A stretch of 64,000 nucleotides of DNA, from positions 124,001 through 188,000 of the IMG/VR virus record IMGVR_UViG_3300042319_002138. The stretch is one strand, 5' to 3'. A model generated the notes under the pieces. It saw nothing but the letters and a program-made list of their open reading frames with translations. It did no database searches and was not told the DNA's origin. Every line of letters begins with the position of its first letter. The first letter of the stretch is position 1. Shown here in pieces: positions 26,298 through 48,435 of the stretch. The position numbers and the translations under genes were made by a program.

Positions 26298-27036
26298 ATG
26301 GGAAACACAAGTTTGGTTAGAACCGATAGAACATAAATATTATCATAAGGAAACTAACGAAGTTTTTAAATCAGTAACAACAATTTTATCATTATTGGAA
26401 CCTCATTTCGATAGTGACTCAGTGGCTTACGCAATATCCCAACAGTCGGATGATGTAAAAAAACCTGAGTATGTTGGTATGACCAAGGGTGAGATATTAG
26501 TAGAATGGGAACGTATTAATCGTGAGGCAAATGAATATGGTACTGAAGTCCATGAAATATTGGAGAGGTACCTATTGGCTGATAGGATATACATACCTAA
26601 AAACGATTATGAAAGAGAGGTAATAAGTAAATTCCAAGAAGTAGATGATATGTCTGGTACAGTTTACCCAGAAGCAGTTTTATTTAGTGAAAAATATAAA
26701 ATTTGTGGAACAGCGGATATTGTAGAGGATTGTGGTGATTATTTTAATATATTGGACTTTAAAACAAATAAAGAACTAAATTACATATCAAAATACAATC
26801 AATGGTTAAATAAACCAGTATCACATTTATCAGATTGTCAATACAACGTATACGCTCTACAACTATCTATATATGCATACATGATACAAATGCAAACAAG
26901 AAAAAAAGTTGGTAAACTACAGATATTTTATTTAAACCCACAAAAAGATTATACCTTTGAAAAAATTAATATGCCCTATTTGGGTAGGGATGCCAAAGCA
27001 ATTTTGGACTATTGGTTAGAAAAAAATAAAAAATAA
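26287..27036 (+). CDS. PD-(D/E)XK exonuclease (RecB/Cas4-like phage exonuclease)
   Basis: SVTTIL, GTEVHEILE, E.....ICGTADIV, ILDFKT and LQLSIYA motifs. Confidence 0.85.
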   Translation: MANKWETQVWLEPIEHKYYHKETNEVFKSVTTILSLLEPHFDSDSVAYAISQQSDDVKKPEYVGMTKGEILVEWERINREANEYGTEVHEILERYLLADRIYIPKNDYEREVISKFQEVDDMSGTVYPEAVLFSEKYKICGTADIVEDCGDYFNILDFKTNKELNYISKYNQWLNKPVSHLSDCQYNVYALQLSIYAYMIQMQTRKKVGKLQIFYLNPQKDYTFEKINMPYLGRDAKAILDYWLEKNKK

Positions 27037-27088
27037 AGTCTTTAGTGTTTAATATTTTTTGTCTATTATTTATTAAATAAACAGATAT

Positions 27089-28240
27089 ATGAGTGATAAA
27101 ATAGAATTCGAACCTAAATTAACTTTAGAGGAGACAATTGGAATAAAAGATAGATTTATAAATTTTTACCGAGACCTTGAGTCAATCCAAGACTATTTTT
27201 TGGCTAGAAAAAAAGAAAAAATTGTGGATATTAACCACGATAAATACACTAAAAACATGTTTGATGATTATAGTGTTGAGCCAAAAAACATGGAATTTGA
27301 AATCGAGGTGATTGAGGGTAATTTATTTAATCCTTCTACACAGATTATCACTTCACTACCTTTAGAATCACAAATCGGTAGACAAATCATGATGGGTATT
27401 AGAGAAAAAACCACTAACAAATATGTTGGGTTTATTCGTGTGGCTTCACCTGTTTTATCTATTAAACCTAGAAATGATTTCTTTGGTGAAACAATTAGAG
27501 CTACAGCTGTTAATAGACATATGATTAATGGGGCCATTATTGTTCCTGTACAACCTTTTGGGTATAACTACTTAGGTGGTAAACTATTAGCTTTAATTTC
27601 ATGTTCACACGAAATTAAAAATATGTTAAAAGAAAAGTATGGTGATAAAATCGATACTTGTTTTTTTGAAACAACCTCCCTTTATGGTGACATCAAAGGT
27701 ATGAGTCAATACGATGGTTTAAAACCATATATCCGTTACCAAGACATGACAGAATCAGATTTGTTTTTATTCCCAACAGAAGAAGTTTATGGGCCGATTA
27801 GAGCTAAAATGAGAGAGTTATACGGTAACCCTGAATGGGGTGGAAATACTGTAGACCCTGTACCATCAGGACCAAAGATGAGAGAGTTTAATAAGGCAAT
27901 ATCAGTCCTTAAAAATCACCTTAAACATTATGATATCGATGCTTATAATGAGTTTCATTCTTTCACCAAAACACATATGAAAGCCAAAACCAAAAAGAGA
28001 TATTATTATTCAAACTTTGGATACGACAATGTTATTGAACATGTTAATTCTGGTGGTGAAATTCCTTTAATTGAAGGACAAAATTTCCATAAACACAAAC
28101 TTTCTCATATGATTGAGTGGTGGAAAGGGAAAGCACAAAAAAGATACGAGAAACTTGTTGAGGAAAATAAACTAAGACACGAAATGGAAATCTACACTCT
28201 TGAAAGAATAGAGAATAACGATATAGACATGGTGAGATAA
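27089..28240 (+). CDS. DUF4338-like / GNAT-fold protein, possible DNA-modifying enzyme
   Basis: GFIRVASP..SIKPR, IVPVQPFGYNYLGGKLLAL and ETTSLYG...SQYDG motifs, as recalled for DUF4338-related phage proteins. Confidence 0.55.
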   Translation: MSDKIEFEPKLTLEETIGIKDRFINFYRDLESIQDYFLARKKEKIVDINHDKYTKNMFDDYSVEPKNMEFEIEVIEGNLFNPSTQIITSLPLESQIGRQIMMGIREKTTNKYVGFIRVASPVLSIKPRNDFFGETIRATAVNRHMINGAIIVPVQPFGYNYLGGKLLALISCSHEIKNMLKEKYGDKIDTCFFETTSLYGDIKGMSQYDGLKPYIRYQDMTESDLFLFPTEEVYGPIRAKMRELYGNPEWGGNTVDPVPSGPKMREFNKAISVLKNHLKHYDIDAYNEFHSFTKTHMKAKTKKRYYYSNFGYDNVIEHVNSGGEIPLIEGQNFHKHKLSHMIEWWKGKAQKRYEKLVEENKLRHEMEIYTLERIENNDIDMVR

Positions 28241-28657
28241 ATGTACGTCGAAGTAAGTGGTAGACAAACAGGTAAATCAACTAGGATGGTTGAGGACATA
28301 GTTCTTTTTTTAGAAGAAAATGGTGGAAAAACAGCTTTAGTGGTTTCACCAACAGGGGCTAGTAGAAAACTAATAAAAGAAAAGATATTTCAAAAATGTG
28401 GTTACTGTATAAACAGAGTAATTACATCACATAAGATGTTACCACCCATGAATACCATGAAACAATATGTAGATGAGTTTTTTTATGTAAAAGAAAAAGA
28501 TTTATTTATTGACGGAAGTGCTTATTATGCTGGTACACCTAAATTAGAAGGTTTCACTGGAAAATACCAAGATATAATAGACCTATTTAACCAAAAAATG
28601 GGTAAAATGGTACAATTAAAACCAATAAAAAAACATGGATTTGGAGGAAGTGATTGA
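28241..28657 (+). CDS. miniature terminase large-subunit ATPase-like protein with C-terminal tag
   Basis: GRQTGKST (terminase-type Walker A), LVVSPT, YVDEFF (Walker B) and GTP (motif III) in only 138 aa. No nuclease domain. Ends LKPIKKHGF. Confidence 0.7.
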   Translation: MYVEVSGRQTGKSTRMVEDIVLFLEENGGKTALVVSPTGASRKLIKEKIFQKCGYCINRVITSHKMLPPMNTMKQYVDEFFYVKEKDLFIDGSAYYAGTPKLEGFTGKYQDIIDLFNQKMGKMVQLKPIKKHGFGGSD

Positions 28658-29036
28658 AAAGTGGGGTAACTTAGGTTTTTTAGATGGGTTAACCGAAGAG
28701 TTTAAAGGTAATACAGCTATAACCTATGAAAAGGCTGCCACTATATTAATTAGTGATGGTCCTTTATTTGGTAGTGGTGATTTTTTAATAACTACTATAT
28801 TCCCTATAATATATAGAATTTGTAAAACAGGTTTAATTATTAAAAATGTCCCAAATTTAATACAAAAATTTGACCAGTTTATAACTGATAATAGAGAGGT
28901 TATTAGTGATTTACATGGAACAAATTTTGATGCTGAGGCTGAGTTATGTAGTTTTTTTGCTGAAGACTATTGTGAATGGATTAAAGACAATCCTGAAATG
29001 GACCCAATAAAATATATACCAAAACATAAATTATAA
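28635..29036 (+). CDS. major-capsid-protein (gp23) fragment-derived small protein with C-terminal tag
   Basis: EKWGNLGFLDGL...TTIFPIIYRI (gp23 N-terminus-like) and DLHGTNFDAEAELC (gp23 HGxDAxAEL-like). Ends PIKYIPKHKL. Confidence 0.7.
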   Translation: MDLEEVIEKWGNLGFLDGLTEEFKGNTAITYEKAATILISDGPLFGSGDFLITTIFPIIYRICKTGLIIKNVPNLIQKFDQFITDNREVISDLHGTNFDAEAELCSFFAEDYCEWIKDNPEMDPIKYIPKHKL

Positions 29037-29329
29037 TGAATTTATCATACACCACATTCAAAAATTGGTTTTTAGATAATTACGGACATTTAGGATTTGA
29101 TTTATCACCACTTTACCAAGACACACAAGATTTAAAATTTTATTTTGGTGTTTTATATAATAACAATAAAACACAGATGGTTAGGATAAGTTTGGAAAGA
29201 GTTTTAGATTTTACTGTTGGTGATAAGGAACTTAGAAAATTAATATTTGACACATTATTAACAACTTATGGTTATAGATTAGATGGTGATTTTATACCAA
29301 TAAAAAAAATTAAACAATTTGAATTGTAA
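29036..29329 (+). CDS. small tagged protein, paralog of 29329..29658
   Basis: WFLDNYGHLGFDLSP vs WFENEFGHLGFTVTP. Ends PIKKIKQFEL. Confidence 0.65.
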   Translation: MNLSYTTFKNWFLDNYGHLGFDLSPLYQDTQDLKFYFGVLYNNNKTQMVRISLERVLDFTVGDKELRKLIFDTLLTTYGYRLDGDFIPIKKIKQFEL

Positions 29330-29658
29330 TGGATGAAATTTCACAATGGTTTGAAAATGAGTTTGGTCATTTGGGGTTCACGGTTACACCTATAATGTAT
29401 AACCCAGATAACTTTTCTCCCGTTAGGGGAGTTTTATTTAGGCATCCACGAGTAAGTAGTAATTATACTTTTAAAACTAATATACAAATTTCAGTTCAAC
29501 TCACAGATGACGTATATCATTCTAATTTTAATGTTGAAACTGAATATAAAGAATTACTTACAGAGGCAGTAATTCAATTTTTAAATATACACGGATTATC
29601 AATAGAGGATTTAAAAGACTTTAAACCTATAAAAAAAATTAATAAATTTAAATTATGA
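29329..29658 (+). CDS. small tagged protein with gp23 C-terminal-like segment
   Basis: TPIMYNPDNFSPVRGVLFRH resembles gp23 DPxNFQPxxGxxTRY. Ends PIKKINKFKL. Confidence 0.65.
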   Translation: MDEISQWFENEFGHLGFTVTPIMYNPDNFSPVRGVLFRHPRVSSNYTFKTNIQISVQLTDDVYHSNFNVETEYKELLTEAVIQFLNIHGLSIEDLKDFKPIKKINKFKL

Positions 29659-30464
29659 TAAAAATAATCTATCACTGTGCTGATTTACACATCAGACTTT
29701 ATAAAAGACACGATGAATACCGTGAACAATTTCAAAAGTTCTTTGATTCAGTTAAAGAACATATGGAAGAAAACAACCTTAACAGAGAAGAGGTTAGGAT
29801 TGTTATTGCTGGTGATGTGGTACACTCTAAGAATCAGTTAACACCTGAACTAGTAGATTTAACAACATGGTTCTTTAAAAATTGTTGTGACATTTGTGAT
29901 ACCATAGTTATTTTGGGTAACCACGATTTCTTAGCCAATAACTTAGATAGAATGGATGCGTTAACACCCATTATTGATACAATGAATGATGATAGACTTA
30001 AGTTTTTAAAACACACAGGATGTTTTGAGGATGAGAATATTGTTTGGTGTTTATATGGTCATATCGAAGGTTCACAGAGACCTGAAATAGAAAAGGCCAA
30101 AGAGGACTTTGGTGATAAGACATACGTTGGTTTATATCATGACCCTTTAATTGGTTTAAAGACAAATGTTGGGTTTGAATTTGAGGACGGACAAGACATT
30201 TCTATTTTTGATGGTTGTGATTTTGTTTGTTGTGGTGATATTCACTTATACCAAGTGATGAATTATCATGGAACTACTATCGTACAACCCTCATCAATGA
30301 TACAACAAGATTTTGGTGAGTCTGTAGATAAACACGGGTTTGTTATATGGAATGTAGAAACTAAAAAACATAAACATATTAACTTAGAATCCGATTATGG
30401 GTTTTATACTTTTAAAATAAGCTCAATAGAGGATATTGAAAATGAAATAGAAAGGTTAGTATGA
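29655..30464 (+). CDS. SbcD/Mre11-like (T4 gp47-like) metallophosphoesterase nuclease
   Basis: ADLH, GDVVH, GNHD and GDIH motifs. Confidence 0.9.
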   Translation: MIKIIYHCADLHIRLYKRHDEYREQFQKFFDSVKEHMEENNLNREEVRIVIAGDVVHSKNQLTPELVDLTTWFFKNCCDICDTIVILGNHDFLANNLDRMDALTPIIDTMNDDRLKFLKHTGCFEDENIVWCLYGHIEGSQRPEIEKAKEDFGDKTYVGLYHDPLIGLKTNVGFEFEDGQDISIFDGCDFVCCGDIHLYQVMNYHGTTIVQPSSMIQQDFGESVDKHGFVIWNVETKKHKHINLESDYGFYTFKISSIEDIENEIERLV

Positions 30465-30775
30465 TAAAACCTAAAAAATATATAAAAAAATACCATTTTG
30501 GTGATTTTGATTATGAAAAGGAGTTAAATAGACTTTTAAATGAATTATCTGGACAGATTCAAAGTAGTAATAGAGGGGGACCTGCCAATTGGATTGTTTG
30601 TTCACCACAAGTAGCTGATTCAATAAACTCAATGATTATGGAATCCCAAATAGGTGATTGGAGGATAGAAGATAACAGTTTTATACAAGATATACAATTA
30701 AGACCTAGAAGAGTACCTCAGTATCTTAACTTGGATATTAGTATCACTAACACAGATAATAATTATTTTTTATAA
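30461..30775 (+). CDS. chimeric capsid-fragment/tail-sheath-fragment protein with N-terminal tag
   Basis: N-terminal PKKYIKKYHF. RGGPANWIVCSPQVA resembles gp23 RGxGNFIIAS. DIQLRPRRVPQYLNLDISIT resembles the gp18 sheath C-terminus. Confidence 0.65.
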   Translation: MIKPKKYIKKYHFGDFDYEKELNRLLNELSGQIQSSNRGGPANWIVCSPQVADSINSMIMESQIGDWRIEDNSFIQDIQLRPRRVPQYLNLDISITNTDNNYFL

Positions 30776-30780
30776 ATAAA

Positions 30781-31095
30781 ATGGCAAATTTTTCAGGATT
30801 AACAACACAAAGAGAAGAAATTATTAAAAAGTGGATGGACTCTGGGTTGTTAGATTGTTTAGACACTAATAATGAAACAAAAATAAATATAGCCTCATTA
30901 CTTGAGGGTCAGACATCACAGTTAATTAATGAAGTGGATGAAGTACCTAGCACTGGTGGTTTTGATACTATAGTGTTCCCAATAGTAAGAAGGATTTATC
31001 CTAGAACATTATTTCAAGACTTACAGTCACATTACGTGGAATTTAAAAAAGATGGTTTAACACCATATAATTACGTTAAAAAACATAAATTATGA
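30781..31095 (+). CDS. gp23 N-terminal fragment protein with C-terminal tag
   Basis: KKWMDSGLLDCL..NIASLLEGQ..LINE..FDTIVFPIVRRIYP. Ends PYNYVKKHKL. Confidence 0.75.
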   Translation: MANFSGLTTQREEIIKKWMDSGLLDCLDTNNETKINIASLLEGQTSQLINEVDEVPSTGGFDTIVFPIVRRIYPRTLFQDLQSHYVEFKKDGLTPYNYVKKHKL

Positions 31096-31313
31096 CAATA
31101 GGGGATAAAGTAAAATATGAGAATTCTTTTTCAGATACTATGATAGGTACTATAGTTAGTAAAGAACAACCTACTTGTAAATGTAAAGGAATGGGTAAAT
31201 GGGTTATTGACTTTAGTGGTGAAATTAAAAAAATAAAAATAAGTGATGAAAGATTAAGTCTATATAATATAGAACCAACTATGACTAATTTAAATTTTAA
31301 TTTTGGAAAATAA
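31092..31313 (+). CDS. small hypothetical protein (SH3/KOW-like start), possible degenerate tag
   Basis: Starts IGDKVKY. Ends PTMTNLNFNFGK, with the same P...F-x-F spacing as the tag. Confidence 0.5.
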   Translation: MTIGDKVKYENSFSDTMIGTIVSKEQPTCKCKGMGKWVIDFSGEIKKIKISDERLSLYNIEPTMTNLNFNFGK

Positions 31314-31704
31314 TAAAAAATATCCTGATAATATTGTCTTTAATGAAAAGACAGATAAATTTGATGCTAACCTAAAGCATTACCCAACAACGGTGGGTGC
31401 TCAAAAGTTTGAAATTTTACAGATAGATAAATCAGATGCAATAAAGGCTGATAAATATTTTAATAAAAAATTAGAAGAATTAAAGGAAGAGTATGATAAG
31501 TTGCTGAATGAGTATGAGTCAACCAAGTTATTATACAACACCAAATATTCATTTCAACCTATATTAGGTGAGATTTATTATATCTATAAGAATAATAATG
31601 ATGAAAACTTTTTAAGTATCATAAAACCTAATGAATGGAATAAACCATGTTATGGTAGTTATAAACTAAATACTAATGGAACATGGGAAGAGATAGAGTA
31701 TTAA
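31303..31704 (+). CDS. DUF2452-like protein
   Basis: YSFQPILGEIYYIYK..FLSIIKPNEW..GSYKL..GTW resembles DUF2452 of Bacteroidota and their phages. TTG start. Confidence 0.6.
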   Translation: MENNKKYPDNIVFNEKTDKFDANLKHYPTTVGAQKFEILQIDKSDAIKADKYFNKKLEELKEEYDKLLNEYESTKLLYNTKYSFQPILGEIYYIYKNNNDENFLSIIKPNEWNKPCYGSYKLNTNGTWEEIEY

Positions 31705-31711
31705 TAATAAT

Positions 31712-32302
31712 ATGAATAGAAATTTAACCCTACAAGAAAAAATAGTAAAATTAACCACAAATAGTTTTCATAACATAGATAATAACATAAGACAAGGTGA
31801 ACAAATTACTCGTGAAAACTATGAAACTTTAAGAGAACAAATAATTGGTCTTTTGGAATATCTTGAAAATGAAAAGGTATATGTTTTAGATTTACCAGGT
31901 AATATAATACCACACCCTGAAGCTAGAAGAAGGATGGTAGACCCTGAGTTAGCTAACACACCAACAACAAAAACTTTAGTAGTTGGTACTCAAAATTTTA
32001 ATACTTTTTATGATTTAGTTATAAAAATAATGGAAGATTTAAGTAGTAATAAAGAAGTTTTTATATACACAATAGACACCGTTAGGATATTCAACCCGAT
32101 AAATTTTGAACCTGATTATAGATACATAGTTAGATATAGTACTATCGATATGGATTATTGGTATAACCCACAATACGTAGAACAAATAAATAACCCTATA
32201 CAACCTGAACAATATTTTGAAAGGTATTCAAATACAAGAACAGATGAAAAATCTAATAAACCAAAATCTATTGGTGATAGTAAATTGATACACAAATTTT
32301 AA
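31712..32302 (+). CDS. hypothetical protein with gp23 C-terminal-like segment and degenerate tag
   Basis: IFNPINFEPDYRYIVRY resembles DPxNFxP...RY. Ends KLIHKF. Confidence 0.55.
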   Translation: MNRNLTLQEKIVKLTTNSFHNIDNNIRQGEQITRENYETLREQIIGLLEYLENEKVYVLDLPGNIIPHPEARRRMVDPELANTPTTKTLVVGTQNFNTFYDLVIKIMEDLSSNKEVFIYTIDTVRIFNPINFEPDYRYIVRYSTIDMDYWYNPQYVEQINNPIQPEQYFERYSNTRTDEKSNKPKSIGDSKLIHKF

Positions 32303-32892
32303 TGGAACTACCTAAAGATTTAAAAGATGAAATATGGGAATACTGTAGATTAAACGATATAACCGATTTGAATGCTTTTATGGTTAGGATGTTAAAACAA
32401 GGTTACAATATTGAAAAATATGGTGCCACCCCTTTTAAAATGGGGCAAAAAGAACCTGAAATTATTGAAAAAGAAATCATCAGGGAAGTGATTGTAGAAA
32501 AAGAGGTGATTAAAGAGGTTATTGTCGAAAAAGAGAAGATTGTTGAGGTAATTAAAGAAGTCCCTGTTGAGGTTATAAAAGAAATAATCGTAGAAAAAAT
32601 TGGTGGTATTACTGAAAATAGAGTGGAAGTACCTGTTGAAGTAATAAAAGAAGTTATTAAAGAGGTTATAGTAGAAAAAATTGTTGAGGTGCCAATTAAA
32701 AACGATAAACAATTTAAAGAATTAGAACAACAAGTTGAAAACCTTAAAATAGAGTTAGAGTTGGAAAAAAATAGAAACTATAAACCAACTAAAACAGAAA
32801 AACCAAAAGAAGAAAATTCAAAAACACCAACTAGCAACGTTATTAGTTGGATATCCAAATCTGAAAGGGATACTGATTTATATGGAGAGTAA
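32302..32892 (+). CDS. protein with EVIKEV/EVPVEV low-complexity repeats
   Basis: Central (E-V/I-I/P-K/V-E-K/V)n repeat followed by a coiled-coil. Confidence 0.7.
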   Translation: MELPKDLKDEIWEYCRLNDITDLNAFMVRMLKQGYNIEKYGATPFKMGQKEPEIIEKEIIREVIVEKEVIKEVIVEKEKIVEVIKEVPVEVIKEIIVEKIGGITENRVEVPVEVIKEVIKEVIVEKIVEVPIKNDKQFKELEQQVENLKIELELEKNRNYKPTKTEKPKEENSKTPTSNVISWISKSERDTDLYGE

Positions 32893-32946
32893 ACAAGTCT
32901 TTATTTAATCAAAAATTTAAAGTATATTTTTATAAATTAAAGAAAT

Positions 32947-35325
32947 ATGGAAAACTTGGTAAAAGAAGTTAAAACTGTTGTGCCTGAAAAGGCTAAAATC
33001 AGAGTTATATGGGATGATAGTCCAGAAAATTACACCCAGGAACGTGCAAAAAGAATTGCTAAATACTTTACTGAGAAATATAACAACCCTAATGTACAGG
33101 TTATTTTTAAACCTAAAAAAGTACTCACTGAAAATGGTGAAGTAGAAATGACCGTTGCTGATAATGTAATGGATACTAATTATCAAAGAAAGTTATTTAA
33201 ACAATGGATTACTGATAATAAAGTAGATGTTGATTGGGATAGACTCTTACGTTTAGATGATAAAGTAAACGAAAAATTATCACAAGAAAGAGAAACAGAT
33301 TATAGATATCGTAATTGGTATATAAAGGAGTTAGAGTGGTCTAATTTCCTTTCTTATGGTGATGGTAATAAAATCTCTTTTAAAGAGTTAGAGGGTATTA
33401 CAGTGATTACTTCAGACCCGTTAAATATGGGTGGTAAAACAACTCTTGCTTTAGATTTACTTTTATTCCTTTTCTTTAATACCACCACAAAAGGTAGTAC
33501 CGCAATTAAAATGTTTAATCTTTTTAGAGAAGATAAAAATGAAGTAGTTGTTAAGGGTAAAGTTGCTATTGATGGTGTAGATTATATCATCGAGAGAACT
33601 GTTGTACGTAAAGCTAAAAGGACTGGTGATGAGTATACCACTAGAACAGACTTATCTTTCTATAGAACCTTACCTGATGGTAGTATTGAAAACTTAGAAG
33701 GTGAACAAAGAAGAGAAACAGAAGAATTTATAAAAAAATCGGTTGGTTCAGTGAATGATTTTTTATTAACAATTATTGCTGATGCCGACAATCTTGAGGA
33801 CATCATTCACACCAAACCGACTGAAAAAGGGCGAATCCTATCTAGATTTATTGGATTAGAAGTTATTGAAGACAAAGAAACTATTGTCAAAGAAATGAAA
33901 TCTAATTGGTCAAAAGGATTAAAATCAGACCAATACAATATTACAGACTTAAATTCTGAGATTGGTGAACTAAAAAGTTTAATTTCTGAAAATGAAAACT
34001 CGATTAAAGAAAATGAATTAGAAATTAAATCCCTAGAACTTAATATTGAGTCTTCCACAGTCAAAAAAGAAAATTTAATTGGTAAAAAAATAGAGATAGA
34101 TTCTGATGTTATTAATTTAAGACCCGAAGATATTGATAATGAAATTGATAGAATCGAATTGTACGGTAAGAAGAAAAAGAGTGAGTATGAGGATACTAAA
34201 AAATCTTTTGATTCTATGACAGAACCAGTTTATGATGAAGATTTACATGAGGAATATGTAAAACAAGAACGAGGATTTAGTTTAGAAGTAGAGAGAGCTA
34301 AATCTAAAATAAAGGAAACTCAAAAAACAATTAAAAATTTAGAAGAGGGTGAGTTCTGTTCTTTATGTAAACAACCTTTAGCTGATGTAGACCATTCAGA
34401 TGAAATTGAGGAAAATAAAGTATTATTAGATACTTTGGGTAGTGATTTATTGTCTTTATCCGAAAAATTAGTTGAGATTACAAATCTAGTTAAAGAACAA
34501 GATAACATTAAATCTTCTGTTTGGGAATACGATAGAACTTCTTTAACGGTTTCTAAACTAGAATTGGATTTAGAAAAATTAAGATTAGAAAGAAAAGAAA
34601 AATTAGACCTTAAAAAACGTTATGAAGATAATCTAGACAATATCCAAAAAAATAAAGATTTGGAGAGTCAGATAATAGGTTATAATTCTAAAATAAGTGG
34701 ATTAGAATTGGAAAAAACTAATAAAATTAAATTAGGTGAAAGATTATCTAATGAAATTGAAACTTATAAAACAAAGATAAATAAGAACGAGGAATACATT
34801 AAAACTATTAAAGCAGAAGAAGAAATTAAAATAATTTTTGATGTTTATGCTAGAATGGTTGGTAAAAATGGTATCCTTAAAATAATAATGAGAAGTGTTA
34901 TGCCTTTAATTAACTCAGAATTGGATAGATTACTAGTAGATACGGCATCATTTAAATTAGAAGTGGATATTAACGATAAGAAAGAAGTTGAATTTTTAAT
35001 AGTAAAAGAAAACGAAAAAGGTGAGGCTATCAAATACCCTATTAATGAAGGTAGTGGATTTGAAAAAACAGTGTCATCATTAGCTTTACGTTGTGTAATG
35101 TCAAAAGTCAGTTGTCTACCAAAACCTAACATAATTGTTTTTGATGAGGTTTTTGGAAAGGTTGCTAACACTAATTTAGAGTTAGTTGGAAACTTCTTTC
35201 AGAAATGTTCAGAAATGTTCCCTAACATTTTTATTATAACACATAATGAAATTGTTAAAGATTGGGCGACTAAAATAATAACAATTAAAAAGAAAAATAA
35301 CATATCATCATTAATGGTACAATAA
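32947..35325 (+). CDS. SbcC/Rad50-like (T4 gp46-like) ABC ATPase with N-terminal extension
   Basis: NFLSYG, NMGGKTT (Walker A), CSLC zinc hook in the coiled coil, GSGFEK signature, IVFDEVFG (Walker B) and IITH. Confidence 0.92.
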   Translation: MENLVKEVKTVVPEKAKIRVIWDDSPENYTQERAKRIAKYFTEKYNNPNVQVIFKPKKVLTENGEVEMTVADNVMDTNYQRKLFKQWITDNKVDVDWDRLLRLDDKVNEKLSQERETDYRYRNWYIKELEWSNFLSYGDGNKISFKELEGITVITSDPLNMGGKTTLALDLLLFLFFNTTTKGSTAIKMFNLFREDKNEVVVKGKVAIDGVDYIIERTVVRKAKRTGDEYTTRTDLSFYRTLPDGSIENLEGEQRRETEEFIKKSVGSVNDFLLTIIADADNLEDIIHTKPTEKGRILSRFIGLEVIEDKETIVKEMKSNWSKGLKSDQYNITDLNSEIGELKSLISENENSIKENELEIKSLELNIESSTVKKENLIGKKIEIDSDVINLRPEDIDNEIDRIELYGKKKKSEYEDTKKSFDSMTEPVYDEDLHEEYVKQERGFSLEVERAKSKIKETQKTIKNLEEGEFCSLCKQPLADVDHSDEIEENKVLLDTLGSDLLSLSEKLVEITNLVKEQDNIKSSVWEYDRTSLTVSKLELDLEKLRLERKEKLDLKKRYEDNLDNIQKNKDLESQIIGYNSKISGLELEKTNKIKLGERLSNEIETYKTKINKNEEYIKTIKAEEEIKIIFDVYARMVGKNGILKIIMRSVMPLINSELDRLLVDTASFKLEVDINDKKEVEFLIVKENEKGEAIKYPINEGSGFEKTVSSLALRCVMSKVSCLPKPNIIVFDEVFGKVANTNLELVGNFFQKCSEMFPNIFIITHNEIVKDWATKIITIKKKNNISSLMVQ

Positions 35326-35333
35326 TTTTTTAG

Positions 35334-35356
35334 TATCTTTGTTGGTATATATTTAT
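35334..35356 (+). promoter_or_regulatory. tandem promoter elements TATCTTTG and ATATTTAT
   Basis: Host-type element at 35334-35341 and late-type element at 35349-35356, upstream of ATG 35371. Confidence 0.5.
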
Positions 35357-35370
35357 AAATAAAAGAAGTT

Positions 35371-35820
35371 ATGGATGCAAGATATATGATTGTTATCCTA
35401 GGTTCCTATAAAGGAATTGAGGAAGATTTAAACAACATAGCTAACGGTGAGGATGGTGTTAATTATGTCGATGGTAACGGTATATTTATGGGTACTTTTT
35501 ATAGTGTTTATAATACTATAGAGATATACGAAAACTTAGTTCATATACCAGCTTTTTTATTGTTTGAGATATCTGACCCCTCACATAGTGCTATAAGTCT
35601 ACCAACGAAATATCTAAAGGGTTTGTTTCCTGAGATTGAAAAAACGTTAAACGAACTTACAGGTGAACCTAAAGTCAAAACTAGAAGAAAAGGTAAGAAA
35701 AAGGTTGAGGTTGAGGAATACAATAATGTTGATGATATTTTGGATAAACTTAGTAGAAACAACTATGATAGAGGCTGTTTGACAGAGAGTGAAATTGAAA
35801 TTTTAGAAAAAAGTTCTTAA
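35371..35820 (+). CDS. hypothetical protein
   Basis: 149 aa. C-terminal VDDILDKLS......LTESEIEILE resembles a DUF6576-like motif. Confidence 0.55.
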   Translation: MDARYMIVILGSYKGIEEDLNNIANGEDGVNYVDGNGIFMGTFYSVYNTIEIYENLVHIPAFLLFEISDPSHSAISLPTKYLKGLFPEIEKTLNELTGEPKVKTRRKGKKKVEVEEYNNVDDILDKLSRNNYDRGCLTESEIEILEKSS

Positions 35821-35847
35821 TTTTTTGATTTTTAAAAAAGTATTCAT

Positions 35848-35855
35848 TATATTTG
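35848..35855 (+). promoter_or_regulatory. Bacteroidota-type -7 element
   Basis: TATATTTG upstream of ATG 35866. Confidence 0.55.
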
Positions 35856-35865
35856 TAAAAAAATT

Positions 35866-36060
35866 ATGAATATGGAAAGTAAGGAATTAAAAAATGAAAT
35901 GAATAAATTACGTCAAGTAAAAGACGTAGTTTTCAAAAATGAGGTTAACAATAATTGTGTTTCTACTCTCAGTGAGATTGAAAAATTAATCAAAAAATAC
36001 CCTAACGATTACGACTTGGGTCAAAATTTAAGAAAATTTTATTTGGAATCGATTAAATAA
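35866..36060 (+). CDS. small hypothetical protein
   Basis: 64 aa, contains KKYPNDYDLGQNLRK. Confidence 0.55.
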   Translation: MNMESKELKNEMNKLRQVKDVVFKNEVNNNCVSTLSEIEKLIKKYPNDYDLGQNLRKFYLESIK

Positions 36061-47976: not shown

Positions 47977-48435
47977 ATGAAAATTACAAAAACAAGTGAG
48001 AAAGGTATTGATTTAATTAAATCTTTTGAAGGATTTATGTCAAAACCTTATTTATGTCCAGCTAAAATCCCAACAATTGGGTATGGAGCAACTTTTTACC
48101 CTGACGGTAAAAAAGTAACCTTAAATGACAAAGCGATTACTGAAGCGGAAGGTGTTGCGTTATTAAAAAGTATGTTAGTAAAGTTTGAACAATACGTTGA
48201 TTCTTACTGTGTGGATACAATTAATCAAGGTCAATTTGATGCATTAGTTTCTTTCGCCTATAACTTAGGTCCAGCTAACTTAAAATCTAGTACATTACTT
48301 AAAAAAGTTAATACTGACCCTAACGACCCAACTATTGAAGTTGAATTCTTAAAATGGACTAAAGCTGGTGGTAAAACACTTAAAGGTTTGGTAAGAAGAA
48401 GAGAGGCTGAAGTTAAATTATATTTTAATAAATAA
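47977..48435 (+). CDS. endolysin, GH24 lysozyme
   Basis: IKSFEG...PYLCPAKIPTIGYG, QFDALVSFAYNLG and GLVRRREAE. Confidence 0.92.
   Translation: MKITKTSEKGIDLIKSFEGFMSKPYLCPAKIPTIGYGATFYPDGKKVTLNDKAITEAEGVALLKSMLVKFEQYVDSYCVDTINQGQFDALVSFAYNLGPANLKSSTLLKKVNTDPNDPTIEVEFLKWTKAGGKTLKGLVRRREAEVKLYFNK

Follow-up and report, generated by a model that had tools for sequence, protein, structure and literature searches.

Conserved structural proteins of phages are recognized by many bacterial defenses. The T4-type major capsid protein gp23 and vertex protein gp24 (Pfam PF07068) adopt the HK97 fold, and the tail sheath gp18 is a multi-domain protein whose C-terminal region corresponds to PF17482 (Phage_sheath_1C). 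Gol, the most conserved segment of T4 gp23, is sensed as a peptide by the Lit protease with EF-Tu, and about 100 N-terminal residues of gp23 bind EF-Tu more stably (PMC3014915). A capsid protein activates CapRel (PMC9712102), and the phage protein DSAD1 counteracts DSR2 activated by the tail tube (PMC10981675 and related papers). DSAD1 is a small phage protein that neutralizes a sensor of a virion protein, but is not known to be derived from the tail tube. Partial copies of virion genes also occur in T4, where the small ORFs alt.-1 and alt.-2 are annotated as an old partial duplication of the head-protein gene alt, and shuffling of cassettes bounded by promoter plus stem-loop elements (PeSL) in hyperplastic regions of T4-type phages is documented (PMC2839356, PMC4122927).

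Here we analyzed two small genes of an uncultured jumbo T4-like phage that follow sbcD within a 64,000-nucleotide stretch of DNA (hereafter, the window). An earlier note, made from the sequence alone, described one as a capsid-sheath chimera and the other as a copy of the gp23 N-terminus reaching the Gol region, both inserted directly after sbcD, and inferred selection for displayed epitopes rather than folded domains. The note's observation was confirmed, with its anatomy correct on every point that could be tested, while its interpretation was supported only in part.

Composition of ORF 30461 and ORF 30781

Both genes are on the plus strand and encode 104 aa. ORF 30461 (30461–30775) starts on the ATGA that ends sbcD (29655–30464, plus strand, 269 aa), an SbcD/gp47-like nuclease subunit gene identified by Pfam Metallophos (E 5.7e-9) and SbcD-like phrog_100 (E 4.9e-16). 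The matching sbcC lies at 32947–35325. ORF 30781 occupies 30781–31095. The full-length major capsid protein (MCP, 599 aa) and sheath (930 aa) of the phage are encoded outside the window, on a longer contig that contains this sequence without mismatch, with the MCP about 125 kb away. The two ORFs lie outside the head-morphogenesis module, between sbcD and sbcC and near primase and an exonuclease.

ORF 30461 consists of a basic N-terminal tag, a capsid piece and a sheath piece. The tag (30464–30499, residues 2–13) has the motif P-x-K-K-x-I-K-K-[HY]-x-[FL]. The capsid piece (30500–30631, residues 14–57) is equal to own MCP 442–484 and T4 gp23 about 340–387, and comprises a helix plus the G-x-A-N-[WF]-[IV]-V strand. 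It matched Pfam Gp23 positions 222–259 (E 1.2e-3), although the score of 18.8 bits is below the 24.4 cut-off, and matched own MCP 445–480 by blastp (E 6.5e-5). A family HMM hit own MCP 443–484 at E 3e-12, and in five related genomes the same profile hit only the full-length MCPs (E about 1e-10). Of 17 family members, 10 hit Pfam Gp23.

The sheath piece (30665–30766, residues 69–102) is equal to own sheath 894–927 of 930 and T4 gp18 about 620–649 of 659, such that the last ~35–50 residues of the sheath are represented. Similarity of this segment to gp18-type profiles had been set beforehand as a test of the chimera. Pfam sheath models (PF04984, PF17482) gave no hit on the ORF or its relatives. 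Conversely, among all 585 ORFs of the phage, the best non-self hit of the C-terminal-half profile was the sheath C-terminus (903–925 of 930), and in the whole PDB the only four hits at E<10 were T4-type gp18 tail sheaths (residues 620–649 of 656–659), with individually weak E-values of 0.14–0.43. Profile-profile comparison by hhalign with an alignment of 43 sheath C-termini gave a probability of 87% and E 3.7e-6. The observed score of 36.1 compared with 10.2 +/- 2.3 and a maximum of 18.9 in 200 column shuffles (z of about 11), and with 11.8 for the reversed alignment. We conclude that this is homology of a fragment, not membership in the sheath family. We first read this half as the MCP E-loop (own MCP 348–374), but support was limited to a Smith-Waterman p of about 0.03 with no profile hit to the MCP, and this reading was rejected in favor of the sheath.

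ORF 30781 joins an MCP N-terminal copy to a 20-residue basic tail. The copy (30796–31029, residues 6–83) is equal to own MCP 14–94 and T4 gp23 about 6–113 (hhalign E 1.2e-15; blastp E 3e-16). It covers the propeptide, the start of the N-arm and the first half of the Gol-equivalent segment. A PDB profile search with the ORF 30781 family gave no capsid hit, as the N-terminal region is too far from T4 gp23, and mapping was therefore done through the own MCP. By this transitive alignment the FPIVRR..LFQD stretch corresponds to own MCP 76–92 and to T4 gp23 95–111, which includes MVRRAIPNLIAFD. The whole 29-residue Gol region is not present, because similarity ends after LFQD at own MCP 94, a point that the earlier note could not see. 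The length of gp23 that binds EF-Tu more stably is roughly what ORF 30781 copies.

The two ORFs cover only 43 and 78 residues of the 599-residue MCP. They lack the E-loop, P-domain, A-domain and insertion domain as a whole, cannot form a capsomer, and carry foreign parts. AlphaFold predicted no confident autonomous fold for ORF 30461 (pLDDT 60.9, pTM 0.27), and the model had too little confidence for a fold search. Alignments used for modeling were shallow, so low confidence is weak evidence for disorder. Single-sequence scores for ORF 30461 are weak, but chance resemblance is refuted by the strong profile-level results of independent searches, the shuffle control, and the further MCP-derived ORFs described below, which reach E-values down to 4e-21.

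Additional capsid-derived mini-ORFs and the terminal tag

The two genes are part of a set of at least seven MCP-derived mini-ORFs, a context not visible to the earlier note. Five more, all on the plus strand, sit at 28635–29658 and 61533–62154. The ORF at 28635–29036 (133 aa) contains MCP 23–83 (blastp E 4.4e-12; HMM E 2.8e-12), a weak MCP 390–403 piece and a C-terminal tag. The ORF at 29036–29329 (97 aa) carries a C-terminal tag and is a paralogue (E 1e-8) of that at 29329–29658 (109 aa), which contains MCP 552–595 (C-terminal strands; blastp E 1.3e-8) and a C-terminal tag. The ORF at 61533–61769 (78 aa) has an N-terminal tag followed by MCP 529–585 (E 1.5e-16). The ORF at 61729–62154 (137–141 aa; ORF 61729) has an N-terminal tag, MCP 357–417 (E-loop strand and spine helix), an inserted MCP 79–108 (N-arm, second half of the Gol-equivalent) and then the post-helix segment (E 4e-21 and 1.8e-7). 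Its Gol-equivalent part aligns to T4 gp23 98–127. The AlphaFold model of ORF 61729 had a pLDDT of 35.8, again too low for a fold search. A tagged paralogue of the tail tube also exists. No pieces of other virion proteins were found at HMM level in the remaining mini-ORFs.

The tag motif of ORF 30461 recurs at termini of most of the other mini-ORFs. It is the most conserved part of the ORF 30461 family, with P4 invariant and K10 nearly invariant, and a segment dN/dS of 0.11. The C-terminal tail and tag of ORF 30781 (31030–31095; ..LTPYNYVKKHKL), with the ATGA junction to the next gene, is invariant in 18 homologues. Its last 18 nt plus the junction are identical in a relative designated G006, where the upstream gene body is unrelated, and dS is low here (0.15 against 0.63 in the rest of the ORF). 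We infer that the shared terminal tag is partly a peptide motif and partly a nucleotide-level gene junction; the junction within the C-terminal tag is another feature the note could not see. The 73-aa gene downstream (31092–31313, plus strand), whose start is coupled to this junction, is conserved in all five lineages and in G006. A reading of the tag as a genome-wide junction element was rejected, as the 18-nt motif is not enriched in the window. The tag and the tail-tube N-terminus share EPKKK, but a tag HMM did not hit the tube itself, leaving derivation from the tube a weak lead. In contrast to PeSL cassettes, the repeated boundary motif lies inside coding sequence and is conserved as a peptide as well, promoter-like and terminator-like sites are at background level in 27000–36000, and the fragments come from two different structural genes and persist as wide families.

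Conservation and divergence of the families

The ORF 30461 family has 16 clusters at 90% identity and about 20 representatives at 50%, and the ORF 30781 family has 18 clusters at 60–99% identity, nearly all of 102–107 aa. The ORF 61729 family is larger, with 114 clusters of constant length. The one long hit of a search of 1.84 billion proteins (P0158, 549 aa) is an unrelated repeat protein. Five lineages with DNA showed only in-frame indels, with dN/dS of 0.26 for ORF 30461, 0.40 for ORF 30781, and 0.26–0.45 across all mini-ORFs. The same analysis gave 0.06–0.09 for a DruA-like gene and for sbcD among its similar alleles, and both ORFs evolve faster than neighboring core genes. The ORF 61729-type protein is 42–45% identical between genomes whose MCP is 79–81% and whose sheath C-terminus is 85–87% identical. 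The ORF 30461 and 30781 types are absent from two relatives that are 96–100% complete and have other genes at that site, which supports the note's term "inserted". Synonymous divergence of both ORFs is lower than that of flanking genes, suggesting recent exchange between lineages.

We considered whether the ORFs are functionless debris of recombination in a hyperplastic region, kept open only because ribosomes must read through them to reach translationally coupled genes, with the tags merely junction sequences. Start and stop codons overlapping throughout the cluster, the junction shared with G006, the depressed dS of the tail, the alt duplication of T4 and documented cassette shuffling (PMC2839356) are consistent with this idea. 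However, it is unlikely. The dN/dS of all mini-ORFs over five lineages is not about 1, although these are pairwise data, parent-like motifs stay conserved in homologues only about 30% identical, and the chimeric architecture is constant across about 20 clusters at 50% identity.

Inferred roles of the miniproteins

The analysis establishes, with high confidence, the anatomy and origin of ORF 30461 and ORF 30781. They are conserved protein-coding genes that arose by capture of short pieces of the phage's own late structural genes in the variable region between sbcD and sbcC, with the MCP piece of ORF 30781 joined to the tail of a resident small gene. They keep only the most conserved helix and strand segments of the parents. 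Either way, they are a clear, datable example of gene birth by capture and fusion of fragments from two structural genes. What the proteins do, including when they are expressed and what they bind, is inferred. We tentatively favor a role as molecular mimics that would be made together with the replication and recombination genes, before or apart from the bulk of the virion proteins, and would present conserved capsid and sheath segments to whatever normally binds them. In this view, they would occupy host sensors or abortive-infection factors that recognize conserved parts of abundant late proteins, without triggering them, in a competition resembling that of DSAD1 with the tail tube on DSR2. 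Here, however, the candidates are literal fragments of the sensed class of proteins, and the sensor is hypothetical.

Several findings fit this reading. The genes are tightly packed with primase, a PD-(D/E)XK exonuclease and sbcCD, next to the DruA-like gene and, for the second cluster, two Mom-like DNA-modification genes, and have no promoter-like spacing of their own. They sit among early-type and anti-restriction-type genes. Timing is inferred from this neighborhood only. Low AlphaFold confidence, conservation of exactly the parent-like motifs, and fast evolution under purifying selection also fit the note's inference of displayed epitopes. Fast evolution and patchy distribution are indirect evidence for a decoy role. 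Conversely, a fragment that binds a sensor might activate rather than block it, and ORF 30781 carries only half of the Gol-equivalent segment. Moreover, the retained segments are largely buried core elements of the folded parents rather than surface epitopes, which fits recognition of unfolded or nascent chains, or partner-subunit binding, better than recognition of folded virion proteins. PADLOC gave no hits on the miniproteins, and no Pfam hit on them points to defense biology.

A role in assembly of the phage's own virions is possible but doubtful. The miniproteins may bind MCP and sheath subunits through retained interface strands and prevent premature or aberrant polymerization (polyheads, polysheaths), or the MCP propeptide carried by ORF 30781 and ORF 28635 may recruit them into the prohead core, to be trimmed by the prohead protease like T4 internal proteins. 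ORF 30781 is essentially the MCP propeptide plus N-arm and keeps an invariant [VMT]-x-E then [VT]-P site at residues 52–56, at the position of the MCP maturation site. The sheath piece lies in the C-terminal region, which forms inter-subunit contacts in contractile sheaths. The tagged tail-tube paralogue, the widespread ORF 61729 family, and low AlphaFold confidence, as for proteins that fold only on a partner, are also consistent. However, the genes lie in replication and recombination clusters rather than structural modules, the ORF 30461 and 30781 types are dispensable, being absent from the two near-complete relatives with 79–81% identical MCPs, and they evolve several-fold faster than the MCP and sheath they would have to fit. 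Were they assembly modulators, they would be a new class of capsid and sheath chaperone made from the client's own strands.

Less likely is inter-phage interference, in which dominant-negative fragments poison head and tail assembly of related co-infecting phages, resident prophages or tailocins, with the producer spared by timing or divergence. Interface-derived fragments are the classic design of dominant-negative assembly inhibitors, and fast evolution and patchy distribution fit conflict genes. The suggested recent exchange between lineages also speaks for this reading. However, the retained segments are those most similar to the producer's own MCP and sheath, and self-poisoning would need a separate escape mechanism, for which there is no evidence.

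Many bacterial defenses fire upon recognizing conserved phage structural proteins, whose segments cannot easily be mutated because they are needed for assembly. If decoys, the miniproteins would show how phages protect indispensable epitopes, and could serve as bait to find the sensors. A broader and speculative reading, which we consider unlikely but not excluded, is that a lineage of jumbo T4-like phages maintains a repertoire of tagged poly-epitope miniproteins, assembled from the most conserved segments of the three most abundant virion proteins (capsid, sheath and, through a tagged paralogue, tail tube), as early decoys that blind host pattern-recognition defenses to late structural proteins. 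This would be a general counter-strategy to sensing of structural proteins that has not been described.

No DNA similarity to deposited phages was found, and no deposited phage has a homologue covering at least 80% of the ORF 61729-type protein. PHROGs has no dedicated family for the miniproteins, only partial "major head protein" hits. Sigma-70-like promoters and terminators around the cluster are at background level. The T4 late promoter TATAAATA is not enriched (26 found, 20 expected) and is absent upstream of the MCP, sheath and tube genes, although one copy sits 3 nt before ORF 30781. In other phage groups, the ESM Atlas lists clusters of 81–171 aa, some possibly truncated gene calls, that carry partial SU10, GP7, crAss or P2 capsid domains.

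Genome context and the segments derived from capsid and sheath proteins

The window is part of a 95.6-kb IMG/VR record (31% G+C) that is contained, without a single mismatch, in a 226-kb contig, here termed G001, whose coordinates are obtained by adding 124000 to those of the window. Near-complete relatives are 318 and 380 kb, so this is a jumbo myovirus. It encodes a gp23-type MCP of 599 aa (Pfam Gp23, 206 bits), a 930-aa tail sheath and a gp19-type tail tube, all three of which lie outside the window. The nearest deposited MCPs are those of Microcystis phage Mel-JY01 and Flavobacterium phage immuto, at about 42-44% identity. The window begins with a baseplate-wedge gene and large unannotated ORFs up to about 24 kb, followed by primase, a PD-(D/E)XK exonuclease, a DruA-like protein, sbcD and sbcC, all on the + strand. 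A second sbcC-like gene, 39% identical to that of the window, occurs in the complete 380-kb relative G006 (G006:C1:56519-58864) in addition to the orthologue (72%). The DruA-like gene (27089-28240, +) encodes a homologue of the Druantia defense protein DruA (Pfam PF14236 E 5e-15, PADLOC DruA E 5.6e-9) and is strongly conserved in all relatives, one of which, G007, carries a second, 316-aa copy beside sbcD. A defense-system component in a lytic jumbo phage could be an antagonist or a weapon against other phages.

ORF 30461-30775 and ORF 30781-31095 are both 104 codons. The first starts on the ATGA that ends sbcD, and the second ends on the ATGA that starts the next gene. Residues 6-83 of ORF 30781 align to residues 14-94 of the phage's own MCP, with E 1.2e-15 by hhalign of the 18-member family, 45% identity and E 3e-16 by blastp, and E 2e-12 in a genome-wide search. 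The N-termini of Flavobacterium-phage and huge-phage MCPs were also found by tblastn. T4 gp23 was retrieved and four MCPs were aligned, which showed that this segment equals T4 gp23 about 6-113, that is, the cleaved propeptide plus the start of the N-arm. The stretch FPIVRR..LFQD equals T4 95-111, which contains the MVRRAIPNLIAFD that an earlier note, made from the sequence alone, had assigned to the T4 Gol region. Gol is described in a review as a 29-residue region in the first quarter of gp23 and the most conserved part of the protein, with about 100 N-terminal residues binding EF-Tu more stably (PMC3014915). ORF 30781 stops resembling the MCP at LFQD and so holds only the first half of the Gol equivalent. 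Its remaining 21 residues are the most conserved part of the family, and the last 16 are nearly invariant.

Residues 14-57 of ORF 30461 match own MCP 442-484, a helix and the G-x-A-N-F-V-V strand, equal to T4 gp23 about 340-387. Single-sequence scores are modest (Pfam E 1.2e-3, blastp E 6.5e-5), but a family HMM scores the own MCP at E 3e-12 and also recovers the immuto and S-SRM01 MCPs. Of 17 family members, 10 hit Pfam Gp23, and in five related genomes the family profile finds only the full-length MCP, at E about 1e-10.

We initially read the C-terminal half of ORF 30461 as the MCP E-loop and expected a relationship to the sheath to fail, but the E-loop reading had only p about 0.03 and no profile support. 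When a profile of the C-terminal half of the family was searched against all 585 ORFs of the phage, the best non-self hit was the sheath, residues 903-925 of 930. Against the whole PDB, the profile returned four sequences at E<10, all T4-type gp18 sheaths matched at residues 620-649 of 656-659. Comparison by hhalign gave E 0.002 against the own sheath alone, and a probability of 87% and E 3.7e-6 against an alignment of 43 distinct sheath C-termini from related contigs, aligning ORF residues 69-102 to sheath 894-927. Two hundred column shuffles gave scores of 10.2 +/- 2.3 with a maximum of 18.9, against the observed 36.1, and the reversed alignment gave 11.8. Pfam's own sheath models do not score the ORF, and we therefore describe the segment as homologous to the C-terminal stretch of the sheath rather than as a sheath family member. 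The capsid-sheath chimera reported in the earlier note is real.

A larger set of capsid-derived ORFs with a common terminal motif

Searches of the genome with Pfam Gp23 and with the own MCP revealed that the two ORFs belong to a larger set. ORF 28635-29036 carries MCP 23-83 plus a weak 390-403 piece, ORF 29329-29658 carries MCP 552-595 and has a paralogue at 29036-29329, ORF 61533-61769 carries MCP 529-585, and ORF 61729-62154 carries MCP 357-417 followed by MCP 79-108. In ORF 61729, the N-arm piece, which equals T4 gp23 98-127 and is the second half of the Gol equivalent, is inserted after the spine helix, and the ORF then continues colinearly with the post-helix segment, as shown by alignment to the S-SRM01 MCP. 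An all-against-all comparison of the 226-kb contig showed no comparable fragments of other virion proteins at blastp level, but did show a 169-aa paralogue of the tail tube protein (phrog_4542, E 3e-8) at G001:C1:214089-214598, outside the window (locus L041:14089-14598). The true tube is at G001 89212-89700.

All seven MCP-derived ORFs carry a motif close to P-x-K-K-x-I-K-K-H-x-[LF], at the C-terminus in 28635, 29036, 29329 and 30781 and at the N-terminus in 30461, 61533 and 61729. The tail tube paralogue begins with the same tag (MEPKKKLKKFNEF), and looser versions end some non-capsid small ORFs of the same regions. A 138-aa P-loop protein (28241-28657, +; Walker A near the N-terminus, weak GajB/UvrD-like hit, E 0.005) ends in a tag-like K-P-I-K-K-H, and its stop region overlaps, in another frame, the start of the first capsid-derived mini-ORF. 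Within the families the tag is the most conserved part, with segment dN/dS of 0.11 and 0.20. However, it is not purely a peptide feature. The last 18 nt of ORF 30781 and its junction with the next gene are identical in G006, where the upstream gene body is an unrelated 165-aa protein, and synonymous divergence is also depressed in this tail. The motif is not a genome-wide junction element.

Conservation, evolutionary rate and predicted fold

ORF 30781 has 18 homologue clusters at 60-99% identity, nearly all 102-107 aa. ORF 30461 has 16 clusters at 90% identity and about 20 representatives at 50% identity, with the same tag-capsid-sheath order down to about 30% identity, and the 61729 type has 114 clusters. 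DNA from five lineages shows conserved synteny (DruA-like, a P-loop ORF, three mini-ORFs, sbcD, ORF 30461, ORF 30781, a 73-aa ORF, DUF2452) with in-frame indels only. By pairwise Nei-Gojobori estimates on these short genes, mean dN/dS is 0.26 for ORF 30461 (capsid part 0.38, sheath part 0.21), 0.40 for ORF 30781 and 0.34-0.43 for the other three, compared with 0.08 for the DruA-like gene and 0.06-0.09 for sbcD among its similar alleles. They are therefore constrained proteins that evolve several-fold faster than core genes. Given dN/dS and motif conservation, debris kept open for translational coupling is the least likely account of the ORFs. Between genomes whose MCPs are 79-81% identical and whose sheath C-termini are 85-87% identical, the 61729-type protein is only 42-45% identical.

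The ORF 30461 and 30781 types are missing from two genomes that are 96-100% complete, which carry other small genes after sbcD. This supports the description of the pair in the earlier note as inserted, although that note's wider interpretation is supported only in part. Synonymous divergence of the two ORFs (30461-31095) between some lineages (dS 0.1-0.4) is well below that of the flanking DruA-like gene and sbcD (0.8-1.9), which hints at recent lateral exchange of this small cassette, but the ORFs are short. The sbcD allele of relative G005 (L009:4902-5699) is only 45% identical to that of the window (29655-30464), while flanking genes are 77-88% identical and about 1 kb of extra DNA precedes it. 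In other lineages sbcD is 83-95% identical, and the G005 locus looks like allele replacement between the tag-bearing junctions.

AlphaFold2 with the family alignments gave a mean pLDDT of 60.9 and pTM of 0.27 for ORF 30461 (17 sequences), and 35.8 for ORF 61729 (54 sequences). Neither looks like an autonomous domain, but the alignments are shallow and this is weak evidence.

Inferred function and origin

Whereas the composition of the ORFs and their conservation as genes are demonstrated by the sequence comparisons, what they do and how they arose are inferred, the former from sequence and gene order alone and the latter from their anatomy. The proteins keep just the most conserved helix and strand segments of two abundant polymerizing proteins and lack the rest of either fold. 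They sit in replication and recombination clusters, next to a DruA-like gene and, for the second cluster, two tandem Mom-like DNA-modification genes just upstream (59085-59816 and 59818-60612, +; PF25680, E 1e-22 and 1e-54). A Mom-like gene lies at the same relative place in a distant 83-kb contig (L045). The capsid- and sheath-derived proteins also evolve fast and are patchily distributed. The common denominator is mimicry of virion-protein segments, and we tentatively favor decoys or antagonists of host factors that recognize conserved parts of late proteins, with timing inferred from gene order only. Gol with Lit, the CapRel capsid trigger, and DSR2 with the tail tube and DSAD1 show that such sensing, and competition for it, exist. 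Modulators of the phage's own head and tail assembly are the main rival, as ORF 30781 copies the propeptide and keeps an invariant x-E then [VT]-P site at the position of the MCP maturation site. Dominant-negative interference with competing phages is a further possibility.

In our view of their origin, copies of short stretches of the late genes were joined to resident sequences of a variable region. In ORF 30781 the breakpoint lies between LFQD and the tail shared with the G006 gene. The junction of the two capsid pieces in ORF 61729 falls where the two MCP segments resemble each other (I-D-R-E-I against I-V-R-R-V), which suggests microhomology-mediated joining. T4 offers a precedent, as its annotation describes alt.-1 and alt.-2 as an old partial duplication of the head-protein gene alt. 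Cassette shuffling in T4-type hyperplastic regions is documented (PMC2839356, PMC4122927), but the promoter plus stem-loop repeats described there are not seen here. Immediately downstream of the full-length MCP gene of G001 is an ORF (L015:2352-3050) with what by eye looks like an HNH-type endonuclease motif, which parallels segD after gene 23 in T4. Endonuclease-driven breaks could be the source of MCP gene fragments.

The nearest feature-space clusters to ORF 30461 in the ESM Atlas are small proteins (81-171 aa) carrying partial capsid domains of other MCP families (SU10, GP7, crAss, P2, encapsulin). With scores of 0.84-0.92 these are leads only, and may be truncated gene calls or a wider phenomenon of mini-capsid ORFs. 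Capsid-piece mini-ORFs are not confined to this phage group, as a JGI contig of a different lineage (L047:480-1392) carries three adjacent small ORFs, each holding one MCP piece (spine helix twice, C-terminal strands once), a few kb from GIY-YIG homing-endonuclease genes. The same 94-aa protein also occurs on a contig of a Chitinophagales MAG. Another small copy of part of a larger gene is present in the window, where a 152-aa ORF (47977-48435, +) is 27% identical (E about 1e-5) to residues 158-303 of a 345-aa protein encoded elsewhere in the genome (G001 70439-71476, -).
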